Assembly (NCBI RefSeq): GCF_964204865.1
Contig: NC_135254.1
Span: 17,236,001 to 17,300,000, forward strand
DNA: 64,000 nt
Source of the DNA: Styela clava
Lineage: Eukaryota
Direction: 5' to 3'
In this document: piece after piece, positions 6,163 through 56,744 of the stretch
Numbering within the stretch: the first letter of the stretch is position 1
Layout: every line of letters starts with the position of its first letter
Position numbers and translations under genes: made by a program
The notes under the pieces: generated by a model
The model's input: the letters and a program-made list of their open reading frames with translations, nothing else
What the model was told of the DNA's origin: nothing
The model's database searches: none

Positions 6163-9100
6163 ATGAACTTGAGTTCGAGTGATGAAGATTACTCACCCAG
6201 AAAACTGGCTTTGAGGCAACTGGCTAACTATACAACAGCCGCTTGTCAGAAGATGCCATCACTGGCTGATGTCAAAAAACAACGTACAACATTAGAACAT
6301 TTATATTTCATGGCTGAAAAAGCAATTGCTGATCAGGATTTGCATGTGCTAAATTCTGTTATGTCAAGTATTGATGATCCTTTTGCCAAACTTGTGGAAA
6401 TGTACTCTGAGAGTATATCAGCTGCACCCAATGATGAAATAAGATTGAAATTCGAAAATGAACTTTGGAATGTGAATAAAGACATTGACAACCTTTTTGC
6501 TCGAGTACGTGAATTCACACATTTACAAAACCCCAAAACGTGGAGTTCAAATCAATGCAAAGATTCTGAACTTCCCGATTCCAGAAGAGAAAGAGCGGAA
6601 AGTGAAGTCGTGTCCTTGTCTGGTAGCATACGAAGTAAACGCTCTTATGCGAGTAGCAAGACATCAATATGCAGCAAAGGGTCTGTACATATGGCCAAGG
6701 CACAAGTTAAGCGTGAAAGAGCTCGAATTGCATTGCAAAGAACAGAAGCAAAGCAGAGAATTGAAGATGAAAAACGCAAAATTGAACATGAAAATCAAAT
6801 ATTGGAAGCAAAATTTGATTTGCAAGAAGCAGAAGCAGAGGCTGCTGTTTGGGAGAATTTGTCTGTGGTTGATGATGCTGGAAGTTCTCGGTCTTCATCA
6901 GATATATTCATCAGATCTGGTGTTCAAAAGGAAGCTACAGCTGTAGTAACTTCGCGGACTGTAGAACACGAACAACAACCTGAGAGAAACGTTACTAATC
7001 AACAGGTGGTAAGTCAATCATCTCCTATCGCTACAACTAAACCTGCTGTTTCACCTAAACAAGATGTGGTGTCTTCAAGCAATGATGACAGCGTGAATTC
7101 TGGATTTTCCCAACAGTCCGCTGATTTTGCACTGAACACAGATTCAAATAATGAACATAATATATCTAAACCTTTGGTCACTGACACTGATAAATTTGCT
7201 CAGAGTATAGCCAGAGCTTTTGGTGAAGCCATGCATGCTCCAAAGTTGGAATATTTGACATTTTCTGGTAATCCTATTGACTACTATATTTTCAAGAAAA
7301 ATTTTGAAACTAATATTGATGCTAAAGCACCCACAGATGCCTTGAAATTAGCTTTCTTACTGCATCAATGCAAAGGAAAAGCGAAATCGCTCATACAACA
7401 CTGTTCTATATTTGAACCAGAAGTGGGTTATGCCAAGGCTAAAGATATTCTTCATAAGAAATTTGGAGATTCAGATGTTGTAACTGAAGCTTTTAAAGAA
7501 CAGTTGCATCGTTGTTCGATTATAAAACCAGATGATCATGCAGCACTGCAAGACTATGCTCTTTTAATGAGAAAATGTGTTCTTGTGCTCGGTAAGCTTG
7601 ATAGCCTTGGAGAAATGAATACATCTGATCGTATTATCGATTTTGCCAGTAAGTTACCATACAGCTCACAGAAAGGATGGGAAAGGAAAGCTGTGAAGAT
7701 CAAAAATAATACTGGTAAAAAGGCTCAGATATGGGACTTGGCTGATTTCATTGAAGAGGAAGCTGATATTGCAGGTTCAAATACTGCGAAATCATTGAAC
7801 ATCAGAAGACGTGAAGATAAGCCACAACAAAAACGGCAATCAACACGAAAGTCTACAACTTATACTGTGAAAACTGAGGATGTCAAAGCAACTTCTCATG
7901 TCCAGAGTCCTGCTATTTTAAAATGTAAGTGTTGTTCCTTTTCCCACCTTTTGTCAAAATGTGAAAAGTTTAATTCTAAATCGATTGAAGAACGAGTAAA
8001 ATTCCTGAAAGAAATTGGTTTCTGCTTCAATTGTCTACGTGGAGGTCACTTGGTAAAGGACTGCAAGTCACAATATACATGCTCTGTTAAAGGGTGTGGA
8101 CGAAGACATCATACTTTGTTGCATTTAAATACAAAGAAATTAGAAAATGAAGAAAATGCAAACTTCAAAAAGAATGATGACAAACAAAGCTCAATTCAGA
8201 AGAATGTGACTACTGCAGTTCAAGCTAATTCAAATGCATGCAAGAGCTCCATGTATACTTACAGAAATATTTTGCCTGTCAGGATTCGAGCAAATAACGT
8301 TGAAGTGGAAACATATGCTCTGGTCGATATTGGGTCCGACACAACTTTTTGTGAAACAAGCTTAATTGAAGAACTTGGTTTGACTGGAAAACAAAGAACT
8401 GTTGAAATCAACACATTAGGACAACGACCAGTCATGCATGATGGTGTTGTTGTAAATCTCACTGTTGCATCAATTGACGATGCAGAAGAAATATTCATTG
8501 AAAATGTGATGTCTATTGACAAGATTCCAGTTCAACCAAATCCTATTCCATCTGAAGAAGAACTCAAGCTACTTCCTCATCTGCAAGAACTTAATCTACG
8601 TAAAATTAAAAATAAATATGTTTCTCTGCTTATTGGAACTGATTGTCCATATGCACATCATGTGTTGGAAGTTCGAACTGGAAACAAGAAGCAGCCATTT
8701 GCACAAAAGTCTCCATTGGGATGGTCGATTATTGGACCATCAGTGAATATGCCATCAACGCACAAGATTCATGTCAACTTTGTGAAGTCTGATATGTTAC
8801 TCGAAGAAGAGATAAGAAGAACATGGTGCACTGATTTTGAAGATGAGATTGGAGATTTGACATTTCCAACCTCGAAAGAAGATAGACATGTTCTAAATTT
8901 TCTGAAGAGCTCTGTAGAGCATTTCGATGGTCATTTCACAATACCTTTACCTTGGCGTCCTGGGACACAGCTGCCGAGCGGAAGTCGTGCATTGGCTGAA
9001 CGCAGATTGGAGTATCTCCATAAACGTTTGTCTAAAAATGATGATTTGAGAGAGAAATACACAGAAAAAATGCAGGAATATATTACAAAAGGTTTTGCGA

Positions 9101-12100
9101 AAAAGCTTTCGCAAGAAGAAGATATCCCTGCAGGTCCTGTTTGGTATTTGTGCCACCACCCGGTGTGTACCGCAAACAAACCGAAAGTGCGTATCGTATT
9201 TGATTGTGCTGCAATTTATAAAGGTGTTTCTCTTAATGACACTCTCATGCCTGGACCAGACTTGGTGTCAAGCCTTATTGGTGTGTTGACTCAATTTCGT
9301 AAGGGACGCATAGCTTTAGTTGCTGATATTGAAGCTATGTTTCATCAAATTAAAGTTAAGAAAGAAGATTGCAATGCTCTGCGATTTCTTTGGTGGCCAA
9401 ATGGTGATATTTTAAAGAAGGCAGAATTATATTTCATGGAACGTCATATATTTGGAGCTTGCAGTTCACCTTGCATTGCTTCATTCTGCTTGAAGGAAAC
9501 CGGAAAACGATTTGGTCATGAATTTGATAAAAGAATTTGTGAGATTATTGAAAATGGATTTTATGTAGATGACTGTCTTACATCTTCTGATAGTGATGAA
9601 GATGCAATAAACACAAAAACACAACTTTGTAATTTGATGAAGAAGGGAGGTTTCAATCTAACGAAGTGGATTTCAAATAGTTCCACTGTGATGGCCAATA
9701 TCCCAGAATCTGAACATACCAAATCTGTGAAAGAGTTGGATTTGCATGAACCTCGAAAAGAGCGTGTTCTTGGAGTTTTCTGGAATGTAGATGCCGATGC
9801 TTTTCAATTTCGTTCAACTGTACCTAAGTTGAAGACATATACAAGAAGGACAATTTTATCTGCAGTTAATTCACTATTTGATCCCCTGGGAATGCTCGCT
9901 CCCGTGATTCTGGTAGCAAAAATGTTGCAACAAGAAATCATCGAAAAAGGTTTCGGCTGGGATGAAGTAATTACAGAAGACAATATTAAAGACTGGGACA
10001 CTTGGTTCAAACAGCTCACTGATCTTGAATATATTTCGATTCCAAGATGTTTCAAGCCACAAGAATTTGGAAATATCAAACATTGTGAGATACACCATTT
10101 TTCAGATGCTTCTAGCTTCGGTTATGGTGTAGTTTCGTATTTGAGGCTGGTCGATGAAAATAATCAAATACACTGCTCATTTTTATGTGGTAAAGCAAAG
10201 GTGGCTCCTCCGAGGGCTGAAAGCATTCCTAGACTAGAACTTGTTGCTGCTGTGCTAGCTGTAAAGGCAGATAAGTGGCTACGATTAAAGTTGAATTATT
10301 CCGATTGTGAGTCCGTATTTTGGACTGATTCGAGTGCAGTGCGTCAAAGCATATGTAATCCAAGAAAACGTTTTCGTACCTTCGTTGCAAATAGATTGGC
10401 CAAGATTCATCGACAGTCAAAGCCGTCTCAATGGCGACAAGTGCCTTCAAAAATCAATCCGGCTGATGACGCATCACGAGGCTTATCATTGAAAACTCTC
10501 ATCAATAAAAGTCGTTGGCTGCTTGCACCTGAATTTTTATGGAAGACCGAAGATAGTTGGCCAAGAAATTCTGAAGATAAAACGGACCTGCCTGATGAAT
10601 TTCAGCCAATTGAAAGAAAGAAAGTGGCAACAATTATTGCTTCGGATATTGACACAATTGACAACTTCATTAAAAGCTTTTCTGATTTACAAAGGCTCAA
10701 GATTGCCACTGCATGGGTGTTACGCTATAAAAGTTTCCTTCGTAACCACAATTCTGTTACCACAAGAAATATAACTGTGGAAGAAATGCAATACGCAGAG
10801 CAAGCACTTGTGAAATATGTTCAGCAGCAGAATTACAAATCTGTCATTGATAATTTATCAGACAAAAGTGAAATTGGTGACAGGAAGGCTCGTCACGAGA
10901 TGAAGAAAGCTGAGCATACAAAGTCAATTGCAAAACTAGATCCAATTATAACTGATGGAATTCTACGGATTGGGGGGAGGTTGGATAAAGCTCCTATTTC
11001 ATTCGAAATGCGACATCCCATCATTTTACCAAATGATCACCACTTAACCAGATTAATCATTGACTTCTATCACAAAAAAGTTGGACATTCAAGTGTTTCT
11101 CATACTTGGAATGTTATTCGTGAAAAATACTGGATCACAAGACCGAGAGCAACAATTCGGCATGAATTAAATAAATGTGTGACCTGCAGAAAAGCTAACA
11201 CACGACAAGGAGAACAGTTAATGGCTGAACTGCCATCTGCTCGTCTAAAGGTTGGTCAACCACCATTCTATTCAACAGGAATCGACTTCTTCGGCCCATA
11301 TTTGATCAAACGTGGGAGAAGTGAAATCAAAAGATATGGCTGCATATTTACATGCCTCACAACAAGAGCTGTACATATTGAACTGGCAGAAGATTTATCC
11401 ACTGATGCTTTCATAAATGCTCTTAGGAGGTTTATGGCAAGAAGATCAAAACCTTTTGAATTGCACAGTGACAATGGAACTAATTTTGTTGGAGCAGAAC
11501 GAATATTACGAGAAGAAATGCATAAGCTCGATCATACCAAATTAGATGGATTCTTCAAAAAACAAGAAATCCGCTGGTATTTCAATACTCCAACAGCCAG
11601 CAACCAAGGAGGTTCCTGGGAAATTTTAATTCGATCCATAAGAAGAATTTTGAACAAGATATTTTACAAATCTCCTGTTGTATCTCAAGATGTTCTGCAT
11701 ACTGCACTCCTGGAGGCAGAATACATAATCAATTCAAGACCTTTGTGTCCAGTTTCTTTTGATCCAAGAGATAATGCACCATTATCTCCAAATCATCTAC
11801 TTCTGCAAAAACCAACACCATGTATTTCACCTGGATTATTCAATAATCAAGATTCCTATAGTCGTCTACAGTGGCGTCGAGTTCAACTTCTTGCTGACGA
11901 GTTCTGGAGGAGATTCTGCAAAGAATATTTGCCAACCATAGCCATTCGTCAAAAATGGCCGGACAAGACAAGAAACTTCACTGTTGGGGACATAGTACTT
12001 GTGGTAAACAACAGTGTACCAAGGGGCAAATGGGACGAATTGTCAACACATATCCGGATCGATTTGACATAGTTCGTAATGTAGATGTCAAAACTCAATG

Positions 12101-28800: not shown

Positions 28801-31800
28801 AAAATATATATCGCAATAATCTGCAAACATGAAATGCCTGGTAATATAGCCAGGTTGTAGATAGAAGTTATTTCATTGTTTATTGTATGAAAATTCCTTC
28901 ATACACTCAGATTCTATTACTGGATTTTATTTTCGAAGTATTCGAAATTTCATATTCGAAAATAATAATTTCGAATGTATTCGAAATAGTGAACTATTCG
29001 GTATTGGCCATCCCTGCCTGCAATATCATCATGGTTGAGCTTAGTGCCTCAACCTCCAGGCCAAGGCACCCACTCTTTTTCCATTTTATACTACATTTTT
29101 AAGTTATGGGTTACTATTTTAAAAGTGAAAATTAAGTCTTACAGTTTATGCAGTAATAAAAGCCTCACAATTTTTTAATTTAGGAAAATGGGCTGGGACA
29201 AAATGTTGACAGCATTCTTTCATCGGAGTCTTCACCATTGTCGGAAAATTGTGATTTTGTTGATGAACTTCTACAAGATTTATTACAAAATCAATCGTCT
29301 TCTCAACAAAATATTATTACAGGTCAGATTGTGATTGACGTATAGGGTGACTGAACCCAGGTCATTTGGAACATATTCTAGAAAGAACATAACTTCTGTG
29401 CAAAGAAAGTTCAGAAATTTAATGAAGGAATTTTCAACCATACTGTATGGTCTCAATTGCTAGTTTTGAACATACTTGACAAGCTGACTTGCTTGAGATA
29501 TACCTCGAACACAATATTATCTCTATAACTGACATGGTCAAACTACGGCCCGCAGGCCAAATCTGGCCTGTCGGGTAATTCAATCTGGCCCGCCAGATGC
29601 TGCCACAACCAAACTAAAACCAAATTTTGATGTTTTAGCGGAAAATAACTCAAGGAATTTTTTGATTTTGCGATTAAATTTAGTTTTCGCATGAGGCTTA
29701 TTGTTTTCCACTTTTTCTTTTGTAACACTGTAAACATTGTTCATAAAATATAACTTTTATGTCACACTTACATGGCCCACCAGTCTAGATGGGCAAATTT
29801 TATGGCCCCGGGTCCAAAAACTTTACCTATCCCTGCTCTACAACATGGTCACATTTTATATTCTTTATAATTCAGATGATATTCTTCTCCAACAAGTCAC
29901 TTCGGGTGATGTAGGAACGAGGAGGTACTCAACTCATACTTCCTCCTCATCTGCCTACTCTTCTTGCTCTGACTCGGGCACTCCATCACCAACTGATCAG
30001 TTTTCTGATCACGGTTCTTGCTCATCAATAGACTTTCAAGACCATGATGTTATAAATTCAACTGTCATCGAATCTGATACTCTATTGATGAAAAAGACTC
30101 CCTTGCCTGTGAAGGCAATTTCTAAACCAAATTTAGTAAATCCAAAATTGAGTCAAAGTAAACGCAACTCAAAGACAGTGGATTGTATTAAAAAACTACA
30201 AGAAACTGACTTGGATAAAGCTGTTCGGCTCGCATGTGAGGAAACAAACAGACTTTTGCGTTTACATAGGTCGGTATCAAACGGCCAAACCGAATCCCCT
30301 GTCTCTTCGCCTCTTAATAACGATGGAAATGGGGTCAAAACAACAGAGAACAAACCTGAAAATGATCTTCTAAAAAGTTTATGTGAAGAAACTATTCTCG
30401 ATAATTCAGTGTCTCAGAAGAAAAATCGCAAAATCAAAGTTACAGGTACATTACCAGGTCAGTAACTCTCAAAATCTGTGTTAATAATGAAAATTGATAT
30501 TTGTTCAGGCCACCAAGATTCAATTCAAATGCTTTTAATTTAACAAGTTGTGGAATAGAATAGTTGTTAAGAGATGTTTCTAAATGTATGTTTGCATATT
30601 TATGGCTCATAAACATTTTGTGAGTTATCCATCAACAGTTTTTAATAATAGCACCGTATTTGAATGAATATCTCTAATATTGAATGAAATAAGAAACTTT
30701 ATGTAAATTTTATAAAAAAAAGCAGTAGTTTTAAAAAAAATTTAACAAAGTAGAAAAAACTATTATGAACAGCATTGAATTAAATTTGGTTGGATGGCAA
30801 CTCTTCAACCATTAACTGTAAACACTTCTATCGGTACCAGGTTAGGGTTAGGCCATAATTTTATTCCGATTTTTTTTATTATAGTTCTATTACGTGGTGT
30901 GGGACTGTCTGTGATAGCCAAGTGAATATATATCCCTGCCCATTGGCTCTCGTCCCTTCACACAACTTGATGTAAAATAGGCAAACAAAATTAGTTACCT
31001 CCATATTGGTACACACACTTCTGGAGTGCTCTTCTATTAATAAATCACAAAAATATTTAAAGTACCGGTAATTGAAAATGTGTTTCATGCCAATTTACAC
31101 ACTTTTATCAATCAATAAACCTAGCATGTTTTTGAATTTTCAGACAATCATCCGAATTCTACTAAACCACAAAAAAGAAAAGCAAGCAGTCTTCAGAATG
31201 CAATTGACAGGTTATATTCTGCTAACAAGACAATGTGCCTGAGTTCACAATTGTCAAGTCAGCCAACGCCATTCAACCGTTCAGCATTGTTAAATAATCT
31301 AAATGGTAAGTAAGTGAGGGATATTTATGTGCGAGAGGATTGCTGGACTCCTCGCTGTTGGTAGGGTAGTTTACATAATGACTGGTTAATTACGGCTTCC
31401 TCCACCATTTGGTCTATGCATCTAAAACAAATAATTAGCTAACAATGCACATACCTGGATGGACACAAATGGACTGGTAACAGCACGAGAGGCTGTGGTT
31501 CGGCATATAATTAAACTGCCTTGTCGCTTTCCTATAAATCCTATCCTATCTCAAGTTGATAATTGAAGTTTGGAAAGGTACAGTACTTACTTACTTGTCT
31601 ATCAAAGACAGCTTGTACTACTCATCCATCAGGTTACTGTAATTTGAAATTTCACTTTTGCCCCTACATATACTTCAATTGCTATTTCTGATATTGTTTT
31701 ATCGACTATTTCTAGGTAATTCACAATCACATGTTACAAAGCCTGTGCAATTAGAATCCATCAATATAGGATCGAAGGAGTCGTGTTTTATTGTGAGTTT

Positions 31801-46989: not shown

Positions 46990-47266
46990 ATGCGGAAATC
47001 TACGTGAAATTGAGTTGTAGGGGAGGTGGTGTATTAGTTGAAGTATTTAGAGGAATATCTCAATATAACTACTTTGGAGATTAATAATCACTGTCGATTC
47101 AAAACCCCATTCAACTCACAACAATGTTTTTCATCATTGTTTTTCGTGTAAGCCCTCATATATTTGCATTTTCATTTAGTCTGTATAATTAATTTGTAGT
47201 TTTATCAGCAATAAATATCAACTGTAAATACAGAAACGATTAGAAATCAGTATATTTATTATATAA

Positions 47267-50200
47267 ATGGCATCGTGCATATTTGATGACGACCTGAAAG
47301 GCAAAAATGAAAAGCTCGAACTCGAACGAATATCTAACGAGGCGGATATGTCGATAACAAGTGAAAATTTCAGCAAATTTCTTGACGAAAAACATCCTCT
47401 CTCGTTTTTAAGGGAAGAGTTCATATTTCCATTAATTAAATACAACGAAAATGGTGAGCATTTTATTATGAAACATTGTGTAGAATGTAGATTATGCTTG
47501 TACTCTACCGATTTATTATGAATCATCTAAGCATGTATATTAATGCTATGAATGTAACTTACAGCCGATTCTTCTCTTGTAAACGTAGACGAAAAATGCA
47601 TTTATATGTGTGGTAATTCACTGGGACTCCAGCCAAAGAGAACCGTTGAGTTGTCACAGCAGGTAATCATTTACGGGCATAATCTCTAAGCTAAAAACCT
47701 ATATAAGTAAGAAGTACCACAGGTAGAAGCTAATAATGATCCAACGAGCTGGTCAACAAGTAATTTACAAAGCAACATGACATTATGTACATAAGATACA
47801 CGCAATTGTGTATTGTATTTAACGAGTTTTGTATTGTAGTTTATTAACTATACCCACACATCTACCAGATATATTTAAGGATTTAGCGTAGATGAAAAAC
47901 CGACCTGAAACTATATACATACAGAACATTTTATTTTGCAATTGCTTTTGACCATTTTTAGTATTGAGGGAAATCAGCTTTGTCTCACATCAGATATTTA
48001 TAATATATAATGCCACTTAAACTACATTCTTTGTATTACGAATACAAAATTACCGTTGTATTCCTCGTGAAAATAGTAATTACTTCATTTACGACATAGG
48101 TACTTGACATGATGGCTCAAGATGAAATCTTGTCGGGGGAGAAATGCTATACCAAGCCTGATCCAGACATGATGTCACAAATGGCAAAAATAGTTGGCGC
48201 TAATGTCGACGAGGTGATACTTTTTTGAATAAGATTAATTAGAATGGTATTGATTATTCTGAAATTTCAAGCAAAGCAAAATAGGAAAAAAACAATTGAC
48301 AGAAGATCTTATTTACAAAAAAGTGATCCGGAAGTCATCCGCATAACGATGATGAAACTATAATATCAATTGCCGTTTGCCGTAATGCAAATATTTATCT
48401 TACTAGCAAATTTTCAAACCTGAACCTTCGGTCGTATTGCAAGCTTTCATTTTGTGGATTCCGGAAATTATCATAGCGCGAGCATTTGCATTTTAGTCAC
48501 TTATCAAGCCTTGATAAATTTTAGTTTCACAAAGTTTTCGTGTGGGAGAAAGAGCCTGAACAAAAACATACACAATATGGACTATCTACCAATATGAATT
48601 ACTATATAAAATAACAATACATTAAGTTCCCTTTTATGTATAGATCGCTGTTATGAATGGACTAACAGTAAATCTCCACTTGCTATTGGTGTCATTTTAT
48701 CGACCAACTGCGAAACGACACAAGATTTTAATTGAAAGCAAAGCATTTCCATCAGATCACTACATGGCAGAATCTCAGATTCAATACCATGGATTTGATC
48801 CAAAAACTAGTTTGATAACATTGGAGCCTCGACCAGTGAGTTTTTTTTTCTTTTGTGCTTGCTTGATGGTGATACCATACAAATATTTTCATTACAAAGT
48901 CTAGTATTTTTACCAACCATATTTGACGTGCTCATTGGGCCATAGTTTTTAATATAATATGAAGCCTGTATGTTCATATTTTGTGACAAGATGGCATTTA
49001 GTGGAAACTGGATTAATTTTCAATATGTACCCTATAAAGCAGTGGTTCTCAAACCCCCCCCCCCCCCCCCAAAAAATTTTTTTGTCAACGTCACAATTGT
49101 GGGGTGCGTCTCACCGTTTGAGAACCACTGCTATAAAGTAACGTAACAAATCAAGCAACATAATGGTCACCATGAATAGATGCAAGACGTTTTAAACAAG
49201 CCAATACAAAGTTCGTCTTTTGTTTGTACGATGGACATTCGTCTCTGAAAAATCGCTTTTCTCTTCGAATACTGGACCAATTGCTTTGAAATTTTCAGTG
49301 GTTAATGATAAAAATTTTCTCCAGAAATCTATTACTTCCTTTTTCGCTATGACGTCACCAAAATTATGTGACTCTATGTTTCCATATATTTGAGCATAGC
49401 TTTCTTGTAATTGAATGAGTTTATTCCTCTTGCATAGGAAGAAGATACTCTTAGGCCTGAAGATATTATTGACTATATTGAAAAGGAGGGGGAATCTATC
49501 GCCGTGATTTTATTCCCAGGTGTTCAATATTACACTGGACAATTATTCGATATGGAATCCATTACAAATGCTGGTCACGCCAAAGGATGCTGGGTAAGTC
49601 ATTATTTTTCTCATATTTTTATACGGCGTAATTTTTGCGACAAACATTGCCCTATGGCCTATACAAGAAGAATCCACTGAGACGCAAGAGGCTACTATAA
49701 TTTCTAAAGATCGCAATCTGTACGGTTCGTAGCCTTGTTCGGAACAAAAGGCACCAGTAAGTCGTCGTATAAAATTCTTTGGACTGGCTAGACTCGTGCT
49801 ACAGTGTTGTATTTTTTCGAAAGCGTGCTGGTATACTTGCGTATTGTGGTATTACAATGTCTGACATAATCTAATGCTGTTGTTGTCGCTATATCAAAAT
49901 CTCGCCTTCTATTTTCAGGTTGGTTTTGACTTGGCGCATGCTGTGGGAAATGTTGAAATTCACTTACATAACTGGAATGTCGATTTTGCAGCATGGTGTA
50001 CATACAAATATCTCAATTCTGGCCCCGGTTGTATCGCAGGAGCATTTGTTCACGAAAAACACAAAAACAATAATTTCCCTAAATTTATGGGTAAGTAATT
50101 TGTTTATTTTAAATAAGATAGCATTTGCATAGATGTATATATACGCTGACTGACACATGATTCCATTGATACTTATAAGTAGTATTTATTCAATTATGTA

Positions 50201-51978
50201 TTTAAAAATAAAGCTTTAGTATAACAAAGAGTCATAAACACTATTAAAAAAAATGTGGGCAAAAACAAAATTTAAGACGCAAAAGAAAGAGCAGTTCTGT
50301 AAATGCTAGTGATGATAAATACGGCTGAATCAAATTAAATGCCGGAATAAAAGATAAAAGTTTATCGCGTCAATTGATTTCCTAAATAATAAATTACCGT
50401 GATCCCGTAGTGTGCGTACCAGTTTAGTGTTAGGCTATAATTTTATCCCGATTTTCCTTATCTTATTTCTCTTACGAGTTCGGGGACTGTCTGTGTTAGC
50501 CAAGTGAATATACCCCTGCTCATAGGTTTCAGTCCCTTTACACAACTTGATGTAAAGTAGGCGAACAAAATTAGTTACCTCCATATTGGTACACTTCTGT
50601 AGCACCGATTTTACTATGCCAGTAACTGTGAACATATTTACTAATTTACGAACAGATTAGTGTGTACAAGATCTAAATTGAGAAAATTAACTATACAGGA
50701 CCTTATCAGGGAGCGAATTCTACTGTAATAAGTGATTACGAAATATCGTCTCCCTGTCCCCTAATGATGGCAAGTGTGAGAGCAAGTATGGAAGTTTTTG
50801 CGAAAACTACAATTAAGAAACTACGAAATAAAAGCTTTTTCTTAACGGGGTAGGTGCTGCGTCGACTCTATAAGCGTTGATGCTCATGGCAACATCCTCA
50901 TATTGCATACCAATTGCGTAACTACATTGTAAACTGTACTGGTATCTCCCCCTAAACTTTGCATAAATTATGCCATTGACCGCCATACTATTTTAATGTT
51001 GAAATTTGAAGAAAAAAAATTGGAAGTGAAAAAAATTTAAAATCAATCATGAATCGGTGAGATTCGATTAGAGTTTCTGCACGTTCTTTTTCAATAAATA
51101 TTATGAACAGCATTTTTTTGGTATTATTAGAATTACAAGGACTAAAGATTCTGAAGTACATTACCGATTACATTTCAGTTATCATTTGAAAACTTCAAGT
51201 TTATAATATATACATGGTCTACAATGCATTTTGAATATCTGGTATTTAAAATATGTCCGTATGCTAAATGCTTGACTAAAGTAAATGATGTGACTAAATG
51301 CTACATTTTCCATGACAGGCTTCTAAAATATCTGATACAACATTTTTTTCCAATGTCAAACAAAGAATTAAACCTACCAACCGTATCCATAATCACGCCA
51401 GATAACTTCCAAGAACATGGCGCACAACTCTCATTAGTTTTTTCTGTTCCATTAATCGAGGTTTGTGGTTTTACTATTTATTTATAAAAAAAAATTTTAA
51501 GGAATATATATATATATATATATATAAGTTTACATAACTTTAACTAGATTCTATGGAATGTTTTCATTCCATCGACTGTATATTGTCGAAAGAGTAAGCG
51601 AAATCAAATTTACCTTTCTCCGTGGCAGCAACTCGTTAATACATCGATAATGTAGGCTGTACTCCTAATTGTATATGAGGTCAGAACATCAAGTATGTCC
51701 CACAGTTCGTTTTTAACTTCGTATATATATACGTCTATTTTAATTATGGATACATAATACTCATAGTTTATGACGTGGTATGTGGTTAATTTTGATACCT
51801 ATTTTCATAGATTCACAAAGAAATGACGAAACGAGGAGTCGTGTGTGATGTCAGGAAACCCAACGTTATTAGGATCGCTCCTACTCCTCTTTATTGCACA
51901 TTTCACGATGTATTTCGATTTGTGGAGGTTTTGAGAGAGTCATTTCAAGCAGCTTCGAGCATTATAATTCGAAAATAA
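47267..51978 (+). CDS. KYNU: Kynureninase-family PLP enzyme with a divergent active site; 9 exons (47267-47453, 47564-47661, 48100-48213, 48644-48836, 49438-49593, 49919-50090, 50699-50849, 51319-51460, 51811-51978)
   Basis: Motifs [70 protein letters not shown] (PLP lysine) and [17 protein letters not shown]; splice phases consistent. Confidence 0.93.
49040..49130. mobile_element. 91-bp hAT-like MITE
   Basis: 15-bp TIRs cagtggttctcaaac / gtttgagaaccactg; 8-bp TSD CTATAAAG. Confidence 0.9.
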
Positions 51979-54252
51979 AAATTTTAATTCGATTGTTTAT
52001 TTTTTTCTTTCGTACCACCCATTCCTGCCTGGGCCCTAACTAACGACTACTTTTTATGAATTAATGAAATTAATGCTAACTATAATTAATTACCGGTAAT
52101 GAAAACACTGATCACGAATAAATAGTCACTTAATACCACAGTCGCATACACACCACATAATTTGCTGGTAGTCAACGATGAGGTACTGAAAACTTGGGCA
52201 TTAAGAGCTGACTAATGATTGATTGTTTGCTTTTTTTTCAAATCGTCTCCTGTTATGTCAAAAGAAGGATACGATATGATTTTACATATTTATCCCGGGG
52301 AAAGAGAAAGCCGATGAGACAGCCCAGCCATATGGCGAACCACGCCCGGTTGCCATTCCATGTCGGGTATGGGATTAGTTAGTTATTTGTTTTTTGGAAG
52401 CATGGACTTGGATGGTGGAGGAAGCAAACCTGCGACCCACGCAGATTAATCAGAGGTGCGGTGGTGAGCGTATTCCTTTTAACGCTTAGCAAGATGCGCC
52501 ACGCCGCCGAGCAATCATTTAACAATTGAACAGCCTCGACTCTCCTATCGTTACTTCGGGGAAGGTCTTTCATCAATCTTAACCTAATGCTTTGAGCTAT
52601 ATTTACGACTCATTGTGTGCAGGTTGTCTAGTCAGTGATCAGAGCGTTGGATCTATGTTGGCTTCGCAGGTCAAAAATAACTCATTAACTTGGTTTGACA
52701 AGAGACATGGTTCGCAATATGATTTTTAATTTTATCCAAATCCTCTGTCTCGCCATAAATATGTAAATCGTTTCCCATGACACCTCGGTCAAGATGTAAT
52801 TAATTGGGAAGGCCATGACGAGAAAAATTGACTCGAACCCGAGATACCCCAGTCTTTTCAAAAATAGTAGCATCGTAAATATATACTACTACGTAGCACA
52901 CCAAACGTATTAGTGACTCGTCATACATAGCTTTGTTCGGAGTGAAAAGATACAAGAAAGGAATTCAGCACTTTTGGTCGTTGGTACGTAGAAATCTAAA
53001 AAATAAATCGATTTTATTACCCACTCCCAACGACTCCCAACATACCGCCCACTCCCAAGATCTAAAAATGACAATCAGTCGTTGATGACAATGTAGCAAA
53101 ATATTATGTGAGGTTAAAGGTCGGAGAAGCATTAGGTTCGAGAAAATTTCCAACCTGTTCAAGTTCCCTAAAATCAAATTAGTGCTAGCCTATATCCTTG
53201 CATTTTTGGACAGGTTAAGGTACGGTATGATGAGATAAATCCTTTAATTTAGTAATTTAAGTGTAATGTGGTATTGGTAGTAGGTACGAAAAAATTGTTG
53301 CACATTAAAATTAGGCGACATATCAGACTACCCGCAGCTGTTTTTTTCATCGTACCGTAACGTGCGGTACCTGTAAGTAAAATTTTTCAATTCCAAATAT
53401 TAATTTTATTTTGACTTCATAATCAGCATAACACAAGATCAAATAATTGATAAAAACAAATAAATGAAAACTGATCAGGAAATCACGAAAGAAAGTACAA
53501 CCTTCAGTAAGGCAGGCAGAGATCCACATATTTAGCCTATTTCTTGTGGTGCAAAAACATTGTACATTAAAACAAATACTAAAAATTGAATGAATACATT
53601 GAGAAACATACAATATTTGAACTACAAACTGCAGAAAAGGCCAGAGCCAAAAGAAATGGTAGACGTGTTAATATTAGGTACGGTAACGTACCGTATATTT
53701 TATTACTTGTGAATGTATGAGGTATTGGAAAATTATGAATCTCCTCCATGCAGCCATTGGTGTAGGTCTGTAGGTGGGCGGTGCCCCACCACCGATAAGC
53801 ACTGTTTTGTTATTACTCCTCCATAAGCACTGTCTTGTTATTACTCTCGCCGGCATCGGCGTCGAGAGAGGCCGAAACGAAAAGAGTCCGCTAGTTTTCT
53901 AGAGATTTTAGTTTCCGGGTCTATTTTGTTTAATTATGTTCATCTTGCTATTTTTTTTGTTACCCTCTCGGGCTCTGTTTTATGCTGTTTTGTTCCATTT
54001 GCAACGTTTTGCGCAACAGAAAGACAGTGCAAAATGATGGGGAGAAAATACCACGAAGCAGAATATTGCCTTGTTTTCTCCTGTTTTCCATTAGCTTCAC
54101 ACTTAGCCGTGTTTTAAGTAAGTATTGAGACTGATTAAGATTTTGGTTACTATTACACAACACAGTTACAGCATTACAATTAGGTCTACGACCGATTTAT
54201 AGTTACTGAACCAGCAAGTTGTTCATGATTTGTTAGTTGACTCAACAGGGAA

Positions 54253-55164
54253 ATGGATTCCGATGAAGAGCGGGGAGAATCTGTGTTGGAAATGGCATTT
54301 AGCTTGATTAAAAATGGATTTGGTGGTTCGTACCAGAGAACAAATCCTAAACGCATTCACGCCCAAGATTTGATCATGCCTAATGCCTCAGGATGTAGTC
54401 CTATAAGCAACTCGGAAACCTTACCAAAAGACGAACTTGTTGCTCGAACAACAGGGAGTACTTCGTTAAATGGAAATACTGTAATTTCTCAGCAGGAATC
54501 TAATTCTAGTATGCCTTTCGCTAGGCATGTTGCTGAAAATGTTTACAATATGCCTACATCACCTTATATGCAAGAAATGATGCCTTACGATAGGCATGTT
54601 GCTGAAAATGTTTACAATATGCCCACATTACCTTATATGAAAGAGATGATGGGATACAATGGAGAAGTGTCTCTTGAAGACAACAATGCACAACTCATGA
54701 ATAACAAGTTAACTTCTGTTTTTCTAACATATGGCGACGAAGCATCTATACCATCGGTTATTGAGATTTATAAGTTTCTGAAACAAAACCTAGTTGAACC
54801 TCACGTAGACTTTATGGAGCAATCTATCAGGAACTGCAACAAAAATGTTTGGGCTAACGATAGAATAAGAGAATCTTCATTTATTATTGTCTGTGTTAAT
54901 GCAAACTACAATCAAATAGTTAATAAGTGCATGGCGACAGCTGACAATGATGATGCTAGTTATGCAGCTTATACCTTTAATGCACTTCAATCCATGTTTA
55001 TCCACAATGGTTGTTTGAATTACAAAGTCATACCAGTTTTGATTGATGGTGCAGTATTTAGTAGCTTGCCACTGTGTTTTCAAAGTACAGATGTCTATAG
55101 ATGGCCTGACAAAAGGGTTGAATTACTGGACAGAATTTTCAAAAACTTTTCTAAACATATTTAA
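54253..55164 (+). CDS. SEFIR-domain protein, Act1/CIKS (TRAF3IP2)-like, 303 aa with a low-complexity N-terminus
   Basis: VFLTY...FLKQN...HVDFME...W...FIIVCVN.NY...MFIHNGCLNYKVIPVL...LP..FQSTDVYRWP...LL.RI parallels the Act1 SEFIR boxes (VFITY, IDIFE, EFIKQGSMNFRFIPVL, VYSWP). Confidence 0.88.
   Translation: MDSDEERGESVLEMAFSLIKNGFGGSYQRTNPKRIHAQDLIMPNASGCSPISNSETLPKDELVARTTGSTSLNGNTVISQQESNSSMPFARHVAENVYNMPTSPYMQEMMPYDRHVAENVYNMPTLPYMKEMMGYNGEVSLEDNNAQLMNNKLTSVFLTYGDEASIPSVIEIYKFLKQNLVEPHVDFMEQSIRNCNKNVWANDRIRESSFIIVCVNANYNQIVNKCMATADNDDASYAAYTFNALQSMFIHNGCLNYKVIPVLIDGAVFSSLPLCFQSTDVYRWPDKRVELLDRIFKNFSKHI
54511..54648 (+). repeat. In-frame coding tandem duplication, 2 x 69 bp (23 aa)
   Basis: MPFARHVAENVYNMPTSPYMQEM / MPYDRHVAENVYNMPTLPYMKEM. 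Confidence 0.92.
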
Positions 55165-56228: not shown

Positions 56229-56744
56229 ATGCCATCACTATTTCTCACTTACGGTCCACATGATGAGAGGACCGTAGAAAAGGTAAAAGAAATTCACGAC
56301 TATCTCCGTACCGAACAGTCTATCCATTGCCATGTTGACTACAAAGACTTGAGAACCAGAAGCATGAACGTCAACATGTGGATAAATGACAATTTGGGGC
56401 GAGACTTTGTGTTGGTGGGCATTGGTAAAGGTTATACAGAATACACATGTAGCTATCTAAGCACAGATGATACTGATGACCCAAATAGAAGTTATAATGG
56501 GTCAATATTTGACAGACTGCAGTCGGAAATTATTCATAATGGTTGTTGGAATAAACGCTATATTCCTATATTATTGGACGGTGCTACAGATGATGATCTT
56601 CCAAGTATTTTGCGAACTACAACATTGTATCATTGGCCGAAAGACCAGCAAAAGCTACTGGACAGATTATTAGGAAGACAAGAATTTAAACCGCCTCTCA
56701 GAGGATCAAGGCCTATAGCCGTTGTCAAGTCTGTTCTCGGTTAA
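56229..56744 (+). CDS. SEFIR-only protein, Act1/CIKS-like, 171 aa
   Basis: LFLTYG...HVDY...MW...FVLVGI...EIIHNGCWNKRYIPILL...LYHWPKD...LLDRLLGRQEFKPPLRG matches the Act1 C-terminus (LLRLLREEEYVAPPRG); clear paralog of the SEFIR domain in 54253-55164. Confidence 0.88.
   Translation: MPSLFLTYGPHDERTVEKVKEIHDYLRTEQSIHCHVDYKDLRTRSMNVNMWINDNLGRDFVLVGIGKGYTEYTCSYLSTDDTDDPNRSYNGSIFDRLQSEIIHNGCWNKRYIPILLDGATDDDLPSILRTTTLYHWPKDQQKLLDRLLGRQEFKPPLRGSRPIAVVKSVLG

Follow-up and report, generated by a model that had tools for sequence, protein, structure and literature searches.

A kynureninase gene lies at positions 47267-51978 on the + strand of a 64,000-nucleotide stretch of DNA from Styela clava (contig NC_135254.1; the whole stretch is hereafter called the window). 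Its product appears to carry the cofactor-binding side of a kynureninase active site, and it has lost the residues which a kynureninase subunit is predicted to lend to its partner across the dimer interface. The only other kynureninase locus found in the assembly keeps exactly these residues and has lost part of the cofactor side. The overall picture is that the window protein may be the ‘cis’ subunit, which binds the cofactor, of a kynureninase divided between two complementary Styela clava paralogues, such that a heterodimer of two half-degenerate chains would hold a single composite active site. This proposal, which is drawn from the comparison of sequences, is given about an even chance of being correct.

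The kynureninase active site

Kynureninase, an enzyme of tryptophan breakdown, is usually described as homodimeric, its two active sites being equivalent. D250 is its aspartate for the PLP pyridine, F165 stacks on PLP, and H102 and N333 are the specificity pair of the eukaryotic enzymes. From its fold-type I architecture, S75, Y275 and R434 are here taken to lie on the subunit that provides K276, the lysine which forms the Schiff base with pyridoxal 5'-phosphate (PLP), and R313, F314 and M316 are taken to lie on the subunit that provides W305. Human numbering is used throughout, as the Marmota position minus 1, with the offset checked at K276, W305 and N333.

In one paper the active site is described as forming at the interface of two monomers, with D250, W305 and N333 interacting with PLP (PMC9191678). 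In another, the legend of Fig. 5 places the key active-site residues H102, W305 and N333 on one monomer and F165, D168, D250 and K276 on the ‘second’ monomer (PMC11329768). The same source names H102 and N333 as the hydroxykynurenine motif, has R434 binding the carboxylate, has W305 and F314 packing on the substrate ring and lists F314 as a hydrophobic substrate contact in its Table 4. In what follows, ‘cis’ refers to the side of K276 and ‘trans’ to the side of W305.

The gene in the window

The gene has nine exons and an open frame of 1380 nucleotides (459 codons and a stop codon), in AT-rich DNA with a GC fraction of 0.30-0.39, and all eight of its introns have GT-AG borders. Its parts are given below with their matches to the kynureninase profile TIGR01814; X1, X2 and X9 are public sequencing runs.

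Exon 1, 47267..47453, + strand: start codon and N-terminal helix region, ending in phase 1; joint 47453|47565 present in X1, X2 and X9
Exon 2, 47565..47662, + strand: S75 kept; weak TIGR01814 match, profile positions 25-46, 11 bits; joint confirmed in contigs
Exon 3, 48100..48213, + strand: remodelled H102 loop, without Trp and without His
Exon 4, 48644..48835, + strand: NGLTVNLH and KAFPSDHY; L137, T138, F165 and D168 kept; TIGR01814 positions 88-149, 82.4 bits
Exon 5, 49438..49593, + strand: GVQYYTGQ; Y225, Y226 and T227 kept; TIGR01814 positions 150-199, 53.3 bits
Exon 6, 49919..50090, + strand: PLP core with D250, H253, Y275 and the Schiff-base lysine K276; TIGR01814 positions 201-253, 77.9 bits
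Intron 6, 50091..50698, + strand: GT..AG, skipped in the spliced contigs of three studies; very high-copy repeat at ~50278-50601, with contig depth of up to tens of thousands
Exon 7, 50699..50849, + strand: remodelled, shortened W305 loop; TIGR01814 positions 276-313 on residues 11-49, 23.7 bits
Exon 8, 51319..51460, + strand: linker to the C-terminal domain; joints confirmed in contigs
Exon 9, 51811..51978, + strand: C-terminal domain; D426, R428 and R434 kept; TIGR01814 positions 356-398, 57 bits; stop codon at 51976-51978

The profile search, made exon by exon, gave no match at E<=1 for exons 1, 3 and 8. The exon scores sum to ~305 bits, which is a different quantity from the curated cut-off of 246.4 bits, a whole-protein score. 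The translated exons contain the motifs GNSLG (exon 2), AFPSDHY (exon 4), FDLAHAVGN and TYKYLN (exon 6) and VIRIAP (exon 9), and both the translations and the column analysis described below place F165 and D168 in AFPSDHY and R434 in VIRIAP. Alignment to structures in the PDB equates exon 6 with human residues 247-299, its first residue being 247, with D250, H253, Y275 and K276 all present. In other words, the window protein shares the PLP core of human kynureninase (KYNU, PDB 2HZP and 3E9K; EC 3.7.1.3) with R434 in place, and its exons 4-6 share 62-70% identity with the KYNU of a mammal, Marmota.

The gene is present in 13 public runs, all of one organism and from four studies. The word content of the gene stretch is 0.20-0.36 in nine of these, close to the share of the exons, and 0.85-0.87 in the other four. 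Runs X1, X2 and X9, which come from three different studies, and X10 were assembled onto the gene. Single contigs in X1 (1378 nucleotides), X2 (1595) and X9 (1517) each contain all eight exon joints, including 50090|50699, and X10, which is DNA-like and covers the introns, contains none of the eight. Since the contigs lack introns, the sequences of X1, X2 and X9 are those of spliced transcripts, the run label ‘RNA?’ being itself a guess; the contigs show neither strand nor expression level. The window gene is transcribed and correctly spliced in three studies.

Two remodelled loops

Unlike human KYNU, the window protein is without W94, H102, W109, W305, W306 (F306), R313, F314, M316 and N333. 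These losses fall into two loops. In exon 3, which has three codons fewer than its counterparts in the paralogue and mammals, the column alignment gives the changes W94M, G98E, G101S, P108C and W109Y together with the absence of H102. A search of the PDB with this exon matched no kynureninase structure; a match to a HAD hydrolase (E=0.13) was set aside as noise, as was a match of exon 7 to polyubiquitin at 7 bits per repeat.

The second loop lies at the junction of exons 6 and 7. Exon 6 closes with FPKFM and the first base of a Gly codon, and between its end and the matched part of exon 7 about 11 of the 22 TIGR01814 positions have no residue in the window gene. Residues 12-49 of exon 7 align to human 328-365, where I-S-S-P stands against I-S-N-P, such that S332 is kept and N333 has become Ser. 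Against human 305-365 the exon falls 12 residues short, and in the window protein the 305-331 loop is reduced by 12 residues. The first 11 residues of the exon include no W, R, F or M, and W305, W306, R313, F314 and M316 are without counterpart; each of these five is at least 95% conserved in a panel of 155 kynureninases and is gone from the window copy. Exon 7 is 36 nucleotides (12 codons) shorter than the corresponding exon of the paralogue, with identical intron positions and phases. The missing residues have therefore been deleted within the exon.

The possibility that an unrecognised exon or alternative splicing restores the canonical GWxGH loop, making the shortened loop an artefact of the gene model, is scarcely credible. 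Position 50090 is joined directly to 50699 in one contig from each of three studies, and the paralogue has the same exon boundary. Moreover, a tblastn comparison of loop segments from 154 relatives with both strands of 47000-52300 turned up no relic of the loop in the introns, all matches being at or below 19.2 bits with E>=0.03. A hidden exon or splice form of this kind is rejected on the contig joints and the intron search.

The original prediction, made from this sequence, had described an uninterrupted nine-exon frame with conserved PLP motifs, the replacement of the loop in exon 48100-48213, a loop about 12 residues shorter at 50090/50699, a protein devoid of H102, W305 and N333, and an intron 50091-50698 in which no GWxGH exon was seen. 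All of this is upheld: every motif is read in the exon translations, exon 3 has neither His nor Trp nor a profile match, the shortening is exactly 12 codons against the paralogue, and the column analysis shows the three residues to be missing, N333 being replaced by Ser in the PDB alignment too. Confirmation of junction 50090|50699 in complementary DNA, which it had proposed, is provided by the contigs of the three studies.

A second kynureninase locus

TIGR01814, searched against the whole assembly (380 contigs, 377 Mb), had ten exon matches in two places only: on C5, at the window gene, and at a locus on C4. A search with the kynureninase of Ciona savignyi gave 11 matches, each of them at the window gene or at the C4 locus. 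A third, canonical kynureninase copy was not found with either query, for which the best candidates were scored and assembly gaps are possible. The search for a paralogue, which the original prediction had proposed, thus had a mixed outcome: a second locus exists, and the canonical copy was not found.

The C4 copy (G000:C4:6758365-6761340, + strand) has nine exons with intron positions and phases as in the window gene, and its frame is open over 465 codons with eight introns. Its exon translations are all contained in XP_039248450.2 (P0270), named ‘kynureninase-like [Styela clava]’; the protein has been deposited in two versions, P0001 and P0270, with 14 differences over 465 residues. Exon-by-exon comparison with the window protein adds up to an identity of 36%, and among Pfam families the C4 protein matches KYNU_C only. 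The structure predicted for the C4 protein has a predicted local distance difference test score (pLDDT) of 91.4 and a predicted template-modelling score (pTM) of 0.90, and it superposes on human KYNU (2hzp) with template-modelling (TM) scores of 0.90/0.94 and a root-mean-square deviation of 1.9 Å at 35% identity. Judged from this model, the C4 protein is a confident predicted kynureninase fold and not a wreck.

In sequence, the C4 copy keeps W94, H102, P108, W305, W306, R313, F314, M316, S332 and N333. Its substitutions are S75I, D250V, H253D, Y275G, K276R and R434T, and A164-F165-P166 is deleted; it has also lost L137, T138, N140, Y170, Y225, Y226, T227, A252, C273 and G283, as well as D426, R428, P430 and more. 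The Schiff-base lysine is, in other words, present in the window copy only.

Complementary losses across conserved columns

Each window exon separately, and P0270, were aligned to 155 full-length kynureninases, and the 119 columns conserved at 90% or more among these were compared. Four predicted proteins without K276 or W305 (P0080, P0097, P0136 and P0071) look frameshifted, truncated or exon-skipped, and were set aside by eye.

The window copy keeps 99 of the 119 columns, including 69 of the 71 in exons 4, 5, 6 and 9 taken together (24/26, 10/10, 23/23 and 12/12, respectively), with 6/8 in exon 8. Its losses are W94, G98, V99, G101, H102, P108 and W109 in exon 3 and W305, W306, R313, F314, M316, N333 and L346 in exon 7, with A30, D37, V131, A171, Y367 and R399 scattered elsewhere. 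The C4 copy keeps 7/11 columns in exon 3, 16/23 in exon 6 and 12/14 in exon 7. Across all 119 columns, both copies keep 68, a further 31 survive in the window copy alone and 17 in the C4 copy alone, and the remaining three are lost from both; these last (G101, W109 and A171) are all changed in Ciona too. Within the 105 columns that Ciona retains, the corresponding counts are 64, 28, 13 and 0 (one-sided Fisher p=0.013).

All the conserved residues that grip PLP and the amino-acid end of the substrate (S75, L137/T138, F165, D168, Y225/Y226, D250, H253, Y275, K276 and R434) are kept in the window protein. The seven key residues can also be sorted by the monomer to which the Fig. 5 legend of PMC11329768 assigns them. 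The window copy has lost all three of the trans residues and none of the four cis residues; the C4 copy has lost none of the three trans residues and three of the four cis residues.

Rates of change in core and loops

Maximum-likelihood trees were built for each exon, and their terminal branches, in changes per site, are given below. These trees have no resolved topology, such that the branch lengths alone are used and the duplication is not dated.

Exon 3: window copy 2.25; C4 copy 0.65; Ciona 2.17
Exon 4: window copy 0.10; C4 copy 1.63; Ciona 0.42
Exon 5: window copy 0.00; C4 copy 2.37; Ciona 0.71
Exon 6: window copy 0.07; C4 copy 0.91; Ciona 0.49
Exon 7: window copy 2.48; C4 copy 1.24; Ciona 1.54
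Exon 9: window copy 0.48; C4 copy 3.36; Ciona 1.80

The cofactor core of the window copy is more conserved than that of a canonical tunicate kynureninase, and its two loops rank with the fastest-evolving rows; the pattern of the C4 copy is the reverse. Identities point the same way. Against Xenopus, Ptychodera, Crassostrea and Marmota, exons 4-6 of the window copy are 59-77% identical and exon 7 is 28-33% identical, the values for the C4 copy being 38-61% and 44-48%, respectively. The PLP core of the window gene is, as judged from these comparisons, under strong constraint. The slow core (exons 4, 5 and 6) indicates that the loss of H102, W305 and N333 is targeted and not part of a general decay, and the claim of the original prediction that the loops had been remodelled in this way is supported by the near-zero core branches relative to those of Ciona.

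In this regard, the four assembled runs differ from one another at 14 exonic sites, of which six are synonymous and eight non-synonymous, with none in exon 3 or exon 7. The preponderance of non-synonymous variants, together with the heavy divergence of the two loops, is what would be expected of a gene that is decaying or that persists as a non-functional expressed relic. This is very improbable for a gene with an open frame of 459 codons, canonical splice sites, splicing in three studies, 99 of 119 conserved columns kept and core branches close to zero.

A composite active site

The window copy has lost the cross-interface residues, and the sole other locus keeps exactly these, which argues for a heterodimer with a composite site. 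Here A, the window protein, would heterodimerise with B, the C4 protein, and the one complete site would be formed by the PLP pocket of A, closed by the trans loops of B. The opposite site, made up of the pocket of B and the loops of A, would be dispensable as a whole and so free to decay. Dispensability of this second site would account for both sets of losses at once. Indeed, as far as the two sequences go, the only arrangement in which both genes rebuild a complete kynureninase site is a putative A:B heterodimer. The window protein combines a kynureninase-like cofactor side with trans loops that lack the features of the family, and it is on this account a family variant that is likely kynureninase-like only together with its paralogue.

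The context of the pathway is also relevant. Exon matches were found in the assembly for TDO, tryptophan 2,3-dioxygenase (PF03301, G000:C10:21120881-21130332), for HAAO, 3-hydroxyanthranilate dioxygenase (PF06052, G000:C3:20684108-20685951), and for QPRT, quinolinate phosphoribosyltransferase (PF01729, G000:C3:8696144-8697579). The genome therefore encodes the route from kynurenine to NAD around kynureninase, and the kynureninase step between these genes is still needed. The heterodimer would most likely still hydrolyse 3-hydroxykynurenine or kynurenine and so supply HAAO and QPRT.

The original prediction had instead proposed a new substrate, with a possible role in secondary metabolism. This finds no direct support and is not needed by the data, the lost residues being ones that act across the dimer. 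In its fuller form the idea is that the window protein alone is a neofunctionalised homodimer, a PLP hydrolase or lyase acting on a different amino acid, with the C4 protein an unrelated pseudoenzyme. The intact and very slowly evolving PLP core fits well with such an enzyme, and the lack of variants in exons 3 and 7 among the four runs could reflect constraint on new loops; a homologue from a mite with comparable loop changes, and a C4 protein for which no transcript-derived sequence was found in the 90% cluster or by fragment search (both discussed below), are further points in its favour. However, it offers no reason for a paralogue without a PLP site to keep H102, W305, W306, R313, F314, M316, S332 and N333, nor for that paralogue to keep 12 of 14 conserved columns in exon 7 as against 16 of 23 in exon 6, and it leaves a genome with TDO, HAAO and QPRT devoid of kynureninase activity. 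Nor does the window show signs of a secondary-metabolism cluster, the neighbours of the gene being a retrotransposon and open reading frames (ORFs) with SEFIR domains. This interpretation is considered somewhat unlikely.

It could also be that the window protein alone is still the kynureninase of Styela, with relaxed or altered specificity, and that the C4 copy is a regulator or a remnant without catalysis. According to PMC11329768, specificity is set by residues 102 and 333, whose effect on turnover in the family is marginal, and the KYNU of Ciona also lacks H102; the presence of the pathway genes is accommodated equally. Against this, W305, which interacts with PLP according to PMC9191678, is gone, as are F314, W306, R313 and M316, and such a stand-alone kynureninase is rather unlikely.

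In a variant of the heterodimer itself there would again be one catalytic site, and the decayed second pocket, where the newly built exon 3 and exon 7 loops of the window protein would line the PLP-less pocket of the C4 protein, would have taken on a non-catalytic role in ligand binding or regulation. This would account for the remodelled exons of the window gene being free of variants and looking ordered. The variant is a decidedly doubtful extension of the split.

Relatives, and points that weigh against the split

Searches for orthologues of either copy covered several routes. With a profile of E4 and E4', P0001 was the sole match at E<=1e-30, among the best 150 of 1562 matches (E<=0.001). 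With full-length P0001, the next best protein was 42% identical, among the best 120 of 452 matches (E<=1e-20). Of 269 proteins compared with the window gene by tblastn, none was more similar to it than ordinary KYNU, with ~44-59% identity over the aligned exons, and fragment searches for orthologues returned one unrelated match from Perkinsus and otherwise nothing.

Two relatives are informative about the loops. The KYNU of Ciona savignyi (P0261, UniRef H2Y9D3) is otherwise canonical; in it Arg, Cys and Leu stand for H102, G101 and W109, respectively, and from these substitutions, the H102 loop was already unusual in tunicates. The mite Dinothrombium tinctorium has a protein (RWS05720.1, P0129; ‘kynureninase-like isoform X2, partial’) which keeps F165, D168, D250, H253, K276 and R434. 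In its loops position 102 is Ile, the WW pair has become GG, the loop is shortened and N333 has become His; unlike the window protein, it has Asn at Y275. Since the mite is an arthropod, its loop change is independent of that in Styela.

A number of these observations weigh against a split kynureninase. The first concerns the statistics: over all 119 columns the mutual exclusion of losses is not significant (one-sided Fisher p=0.11), and significance needs the conditioning on Ciona. The second is that the subunit side of S75, Y275, R313, F314, M316 and R434 comes from general knowledge of fold-type I enzymes. The H102 loop is in any case variable in tunicates, Ciona savignyi having R102 and an exon 3 branch of 2.17, and the eight non-synonymous against six synonymous exonic variants are only weak evidence of constraint. 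With neither copy's orthologue found elsewhere in the above searches, the pair is for now known from one species. On the side of the C4 copy, the 90% cluster of the protein holds no member from a transcript assembly (it consists of two NCBI/UniRef entries and a 49-residue ENA fragment), and a fragment search with a 151-residue piece of the C4 protein gave no C4 fragment, its sole match being the unrelated one from Perkinsus. Finally, the mite protein suggests that there may be loop-less kynureninase-like enzymes which work alone; alternatively, it could be a second case of such a split.

Surroundings of the gene in the window

Within the gene, very high-copy repeats occupy 49144-49467 (intron 4) and 50278-50601 (intron 6). 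The summed contig depth of these intron repeats ranges from thousands to hundreds of thousands in the four runs, where loose ends and odd joints are numerous. A 23-nucleotide inverted repeat (49032-49054 and 49116-49138) stands around a poly-C/poly-A tract and has the look of a miniature inverted-repeat transposable element (MITE). The other features of the window are as follows.

6163-12072, + strand: uninterrupted ORF of 1969 amino acids, a BEL/Pao-type long terminal repeat (LTR) retrotransposon, with Pfam matches to Peptidase_A17, RVT_1, Integrase_H2C2, DUF1759 and DUF5641
29737-30465, + strand: Ser-rich ORF of 242 amino acids, without a Pfam match
54253-55164 and 56229-56744, + strand: single-ORF proteins of 303 and 171 amino acids, with SEFIR domains that score 33 and 36 bits, respectively; they lie side by side, closely downstream of the kynureninase, and have the look of tandem paralogues

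Comparison with other split enzymes, and implications

Enzymes in which an impaired subunit is activated by a dead paralogue include the AdoMetDC of trypanosomatids with its prozyme and the deoxyhypusine synthase of the same organisms; these have other folds and cofactors. A precedent with this fold type is serine palmitoyltransferase, which, as the Styela pair is proposed to be, is a fold-type I PLP enzyme built from two paralogues, LCB1 and LCB2 (SPTLC1 and SPTLC2). The PLP lysine and key catalytic residues are found only in hLCB2a, and hLCB1 is without the lysine and keeps other putative catalytic residues; under the working hypothesis each hLCB1/hLCB2a heterodimer has one active site, the bacterial enzyme being homodimeric (PMC3794620). 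In Styela likewise, K276 is present in the window copy only, no third locus was found, and the lysine-less C4 copy keeps the predicted trans residues H102, W305 and N333 which the window copy has lost. The two systems differ in that serine palmitoyltransferase belongs to the alpha-oxoamine synthase family and is membrane-bound, ancient and universal in eukaryotes, whereas the Styela pair is of a soluble type and has been seen in one species so far.

A literature search, judged by titles and the starts of abstracts, found neither a kynureninase pseudoenzyme nor a heterodimeric kynureninase. The enzyme is a target for drugs and for protein engineering, HsKYNase being an example (PMC11329768, PMC9191678). 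If the second pocket has indeed been re-used, the pair would offer a young, single-lineage snapshot of how pairs of enzyme and pseudoenzyme such as LCB1/LCB2 arise and gain regulation. If the split itself is real, it would be a young counterpart of the ancient LCB1/LCB2 division of serine palmitoyltransferase, and the natural pairing of a cis-only with a trans-only protein would be a clean case of subfunctionalisation at the level of half an active site, one that shows which residues of kynureninase act in trans.

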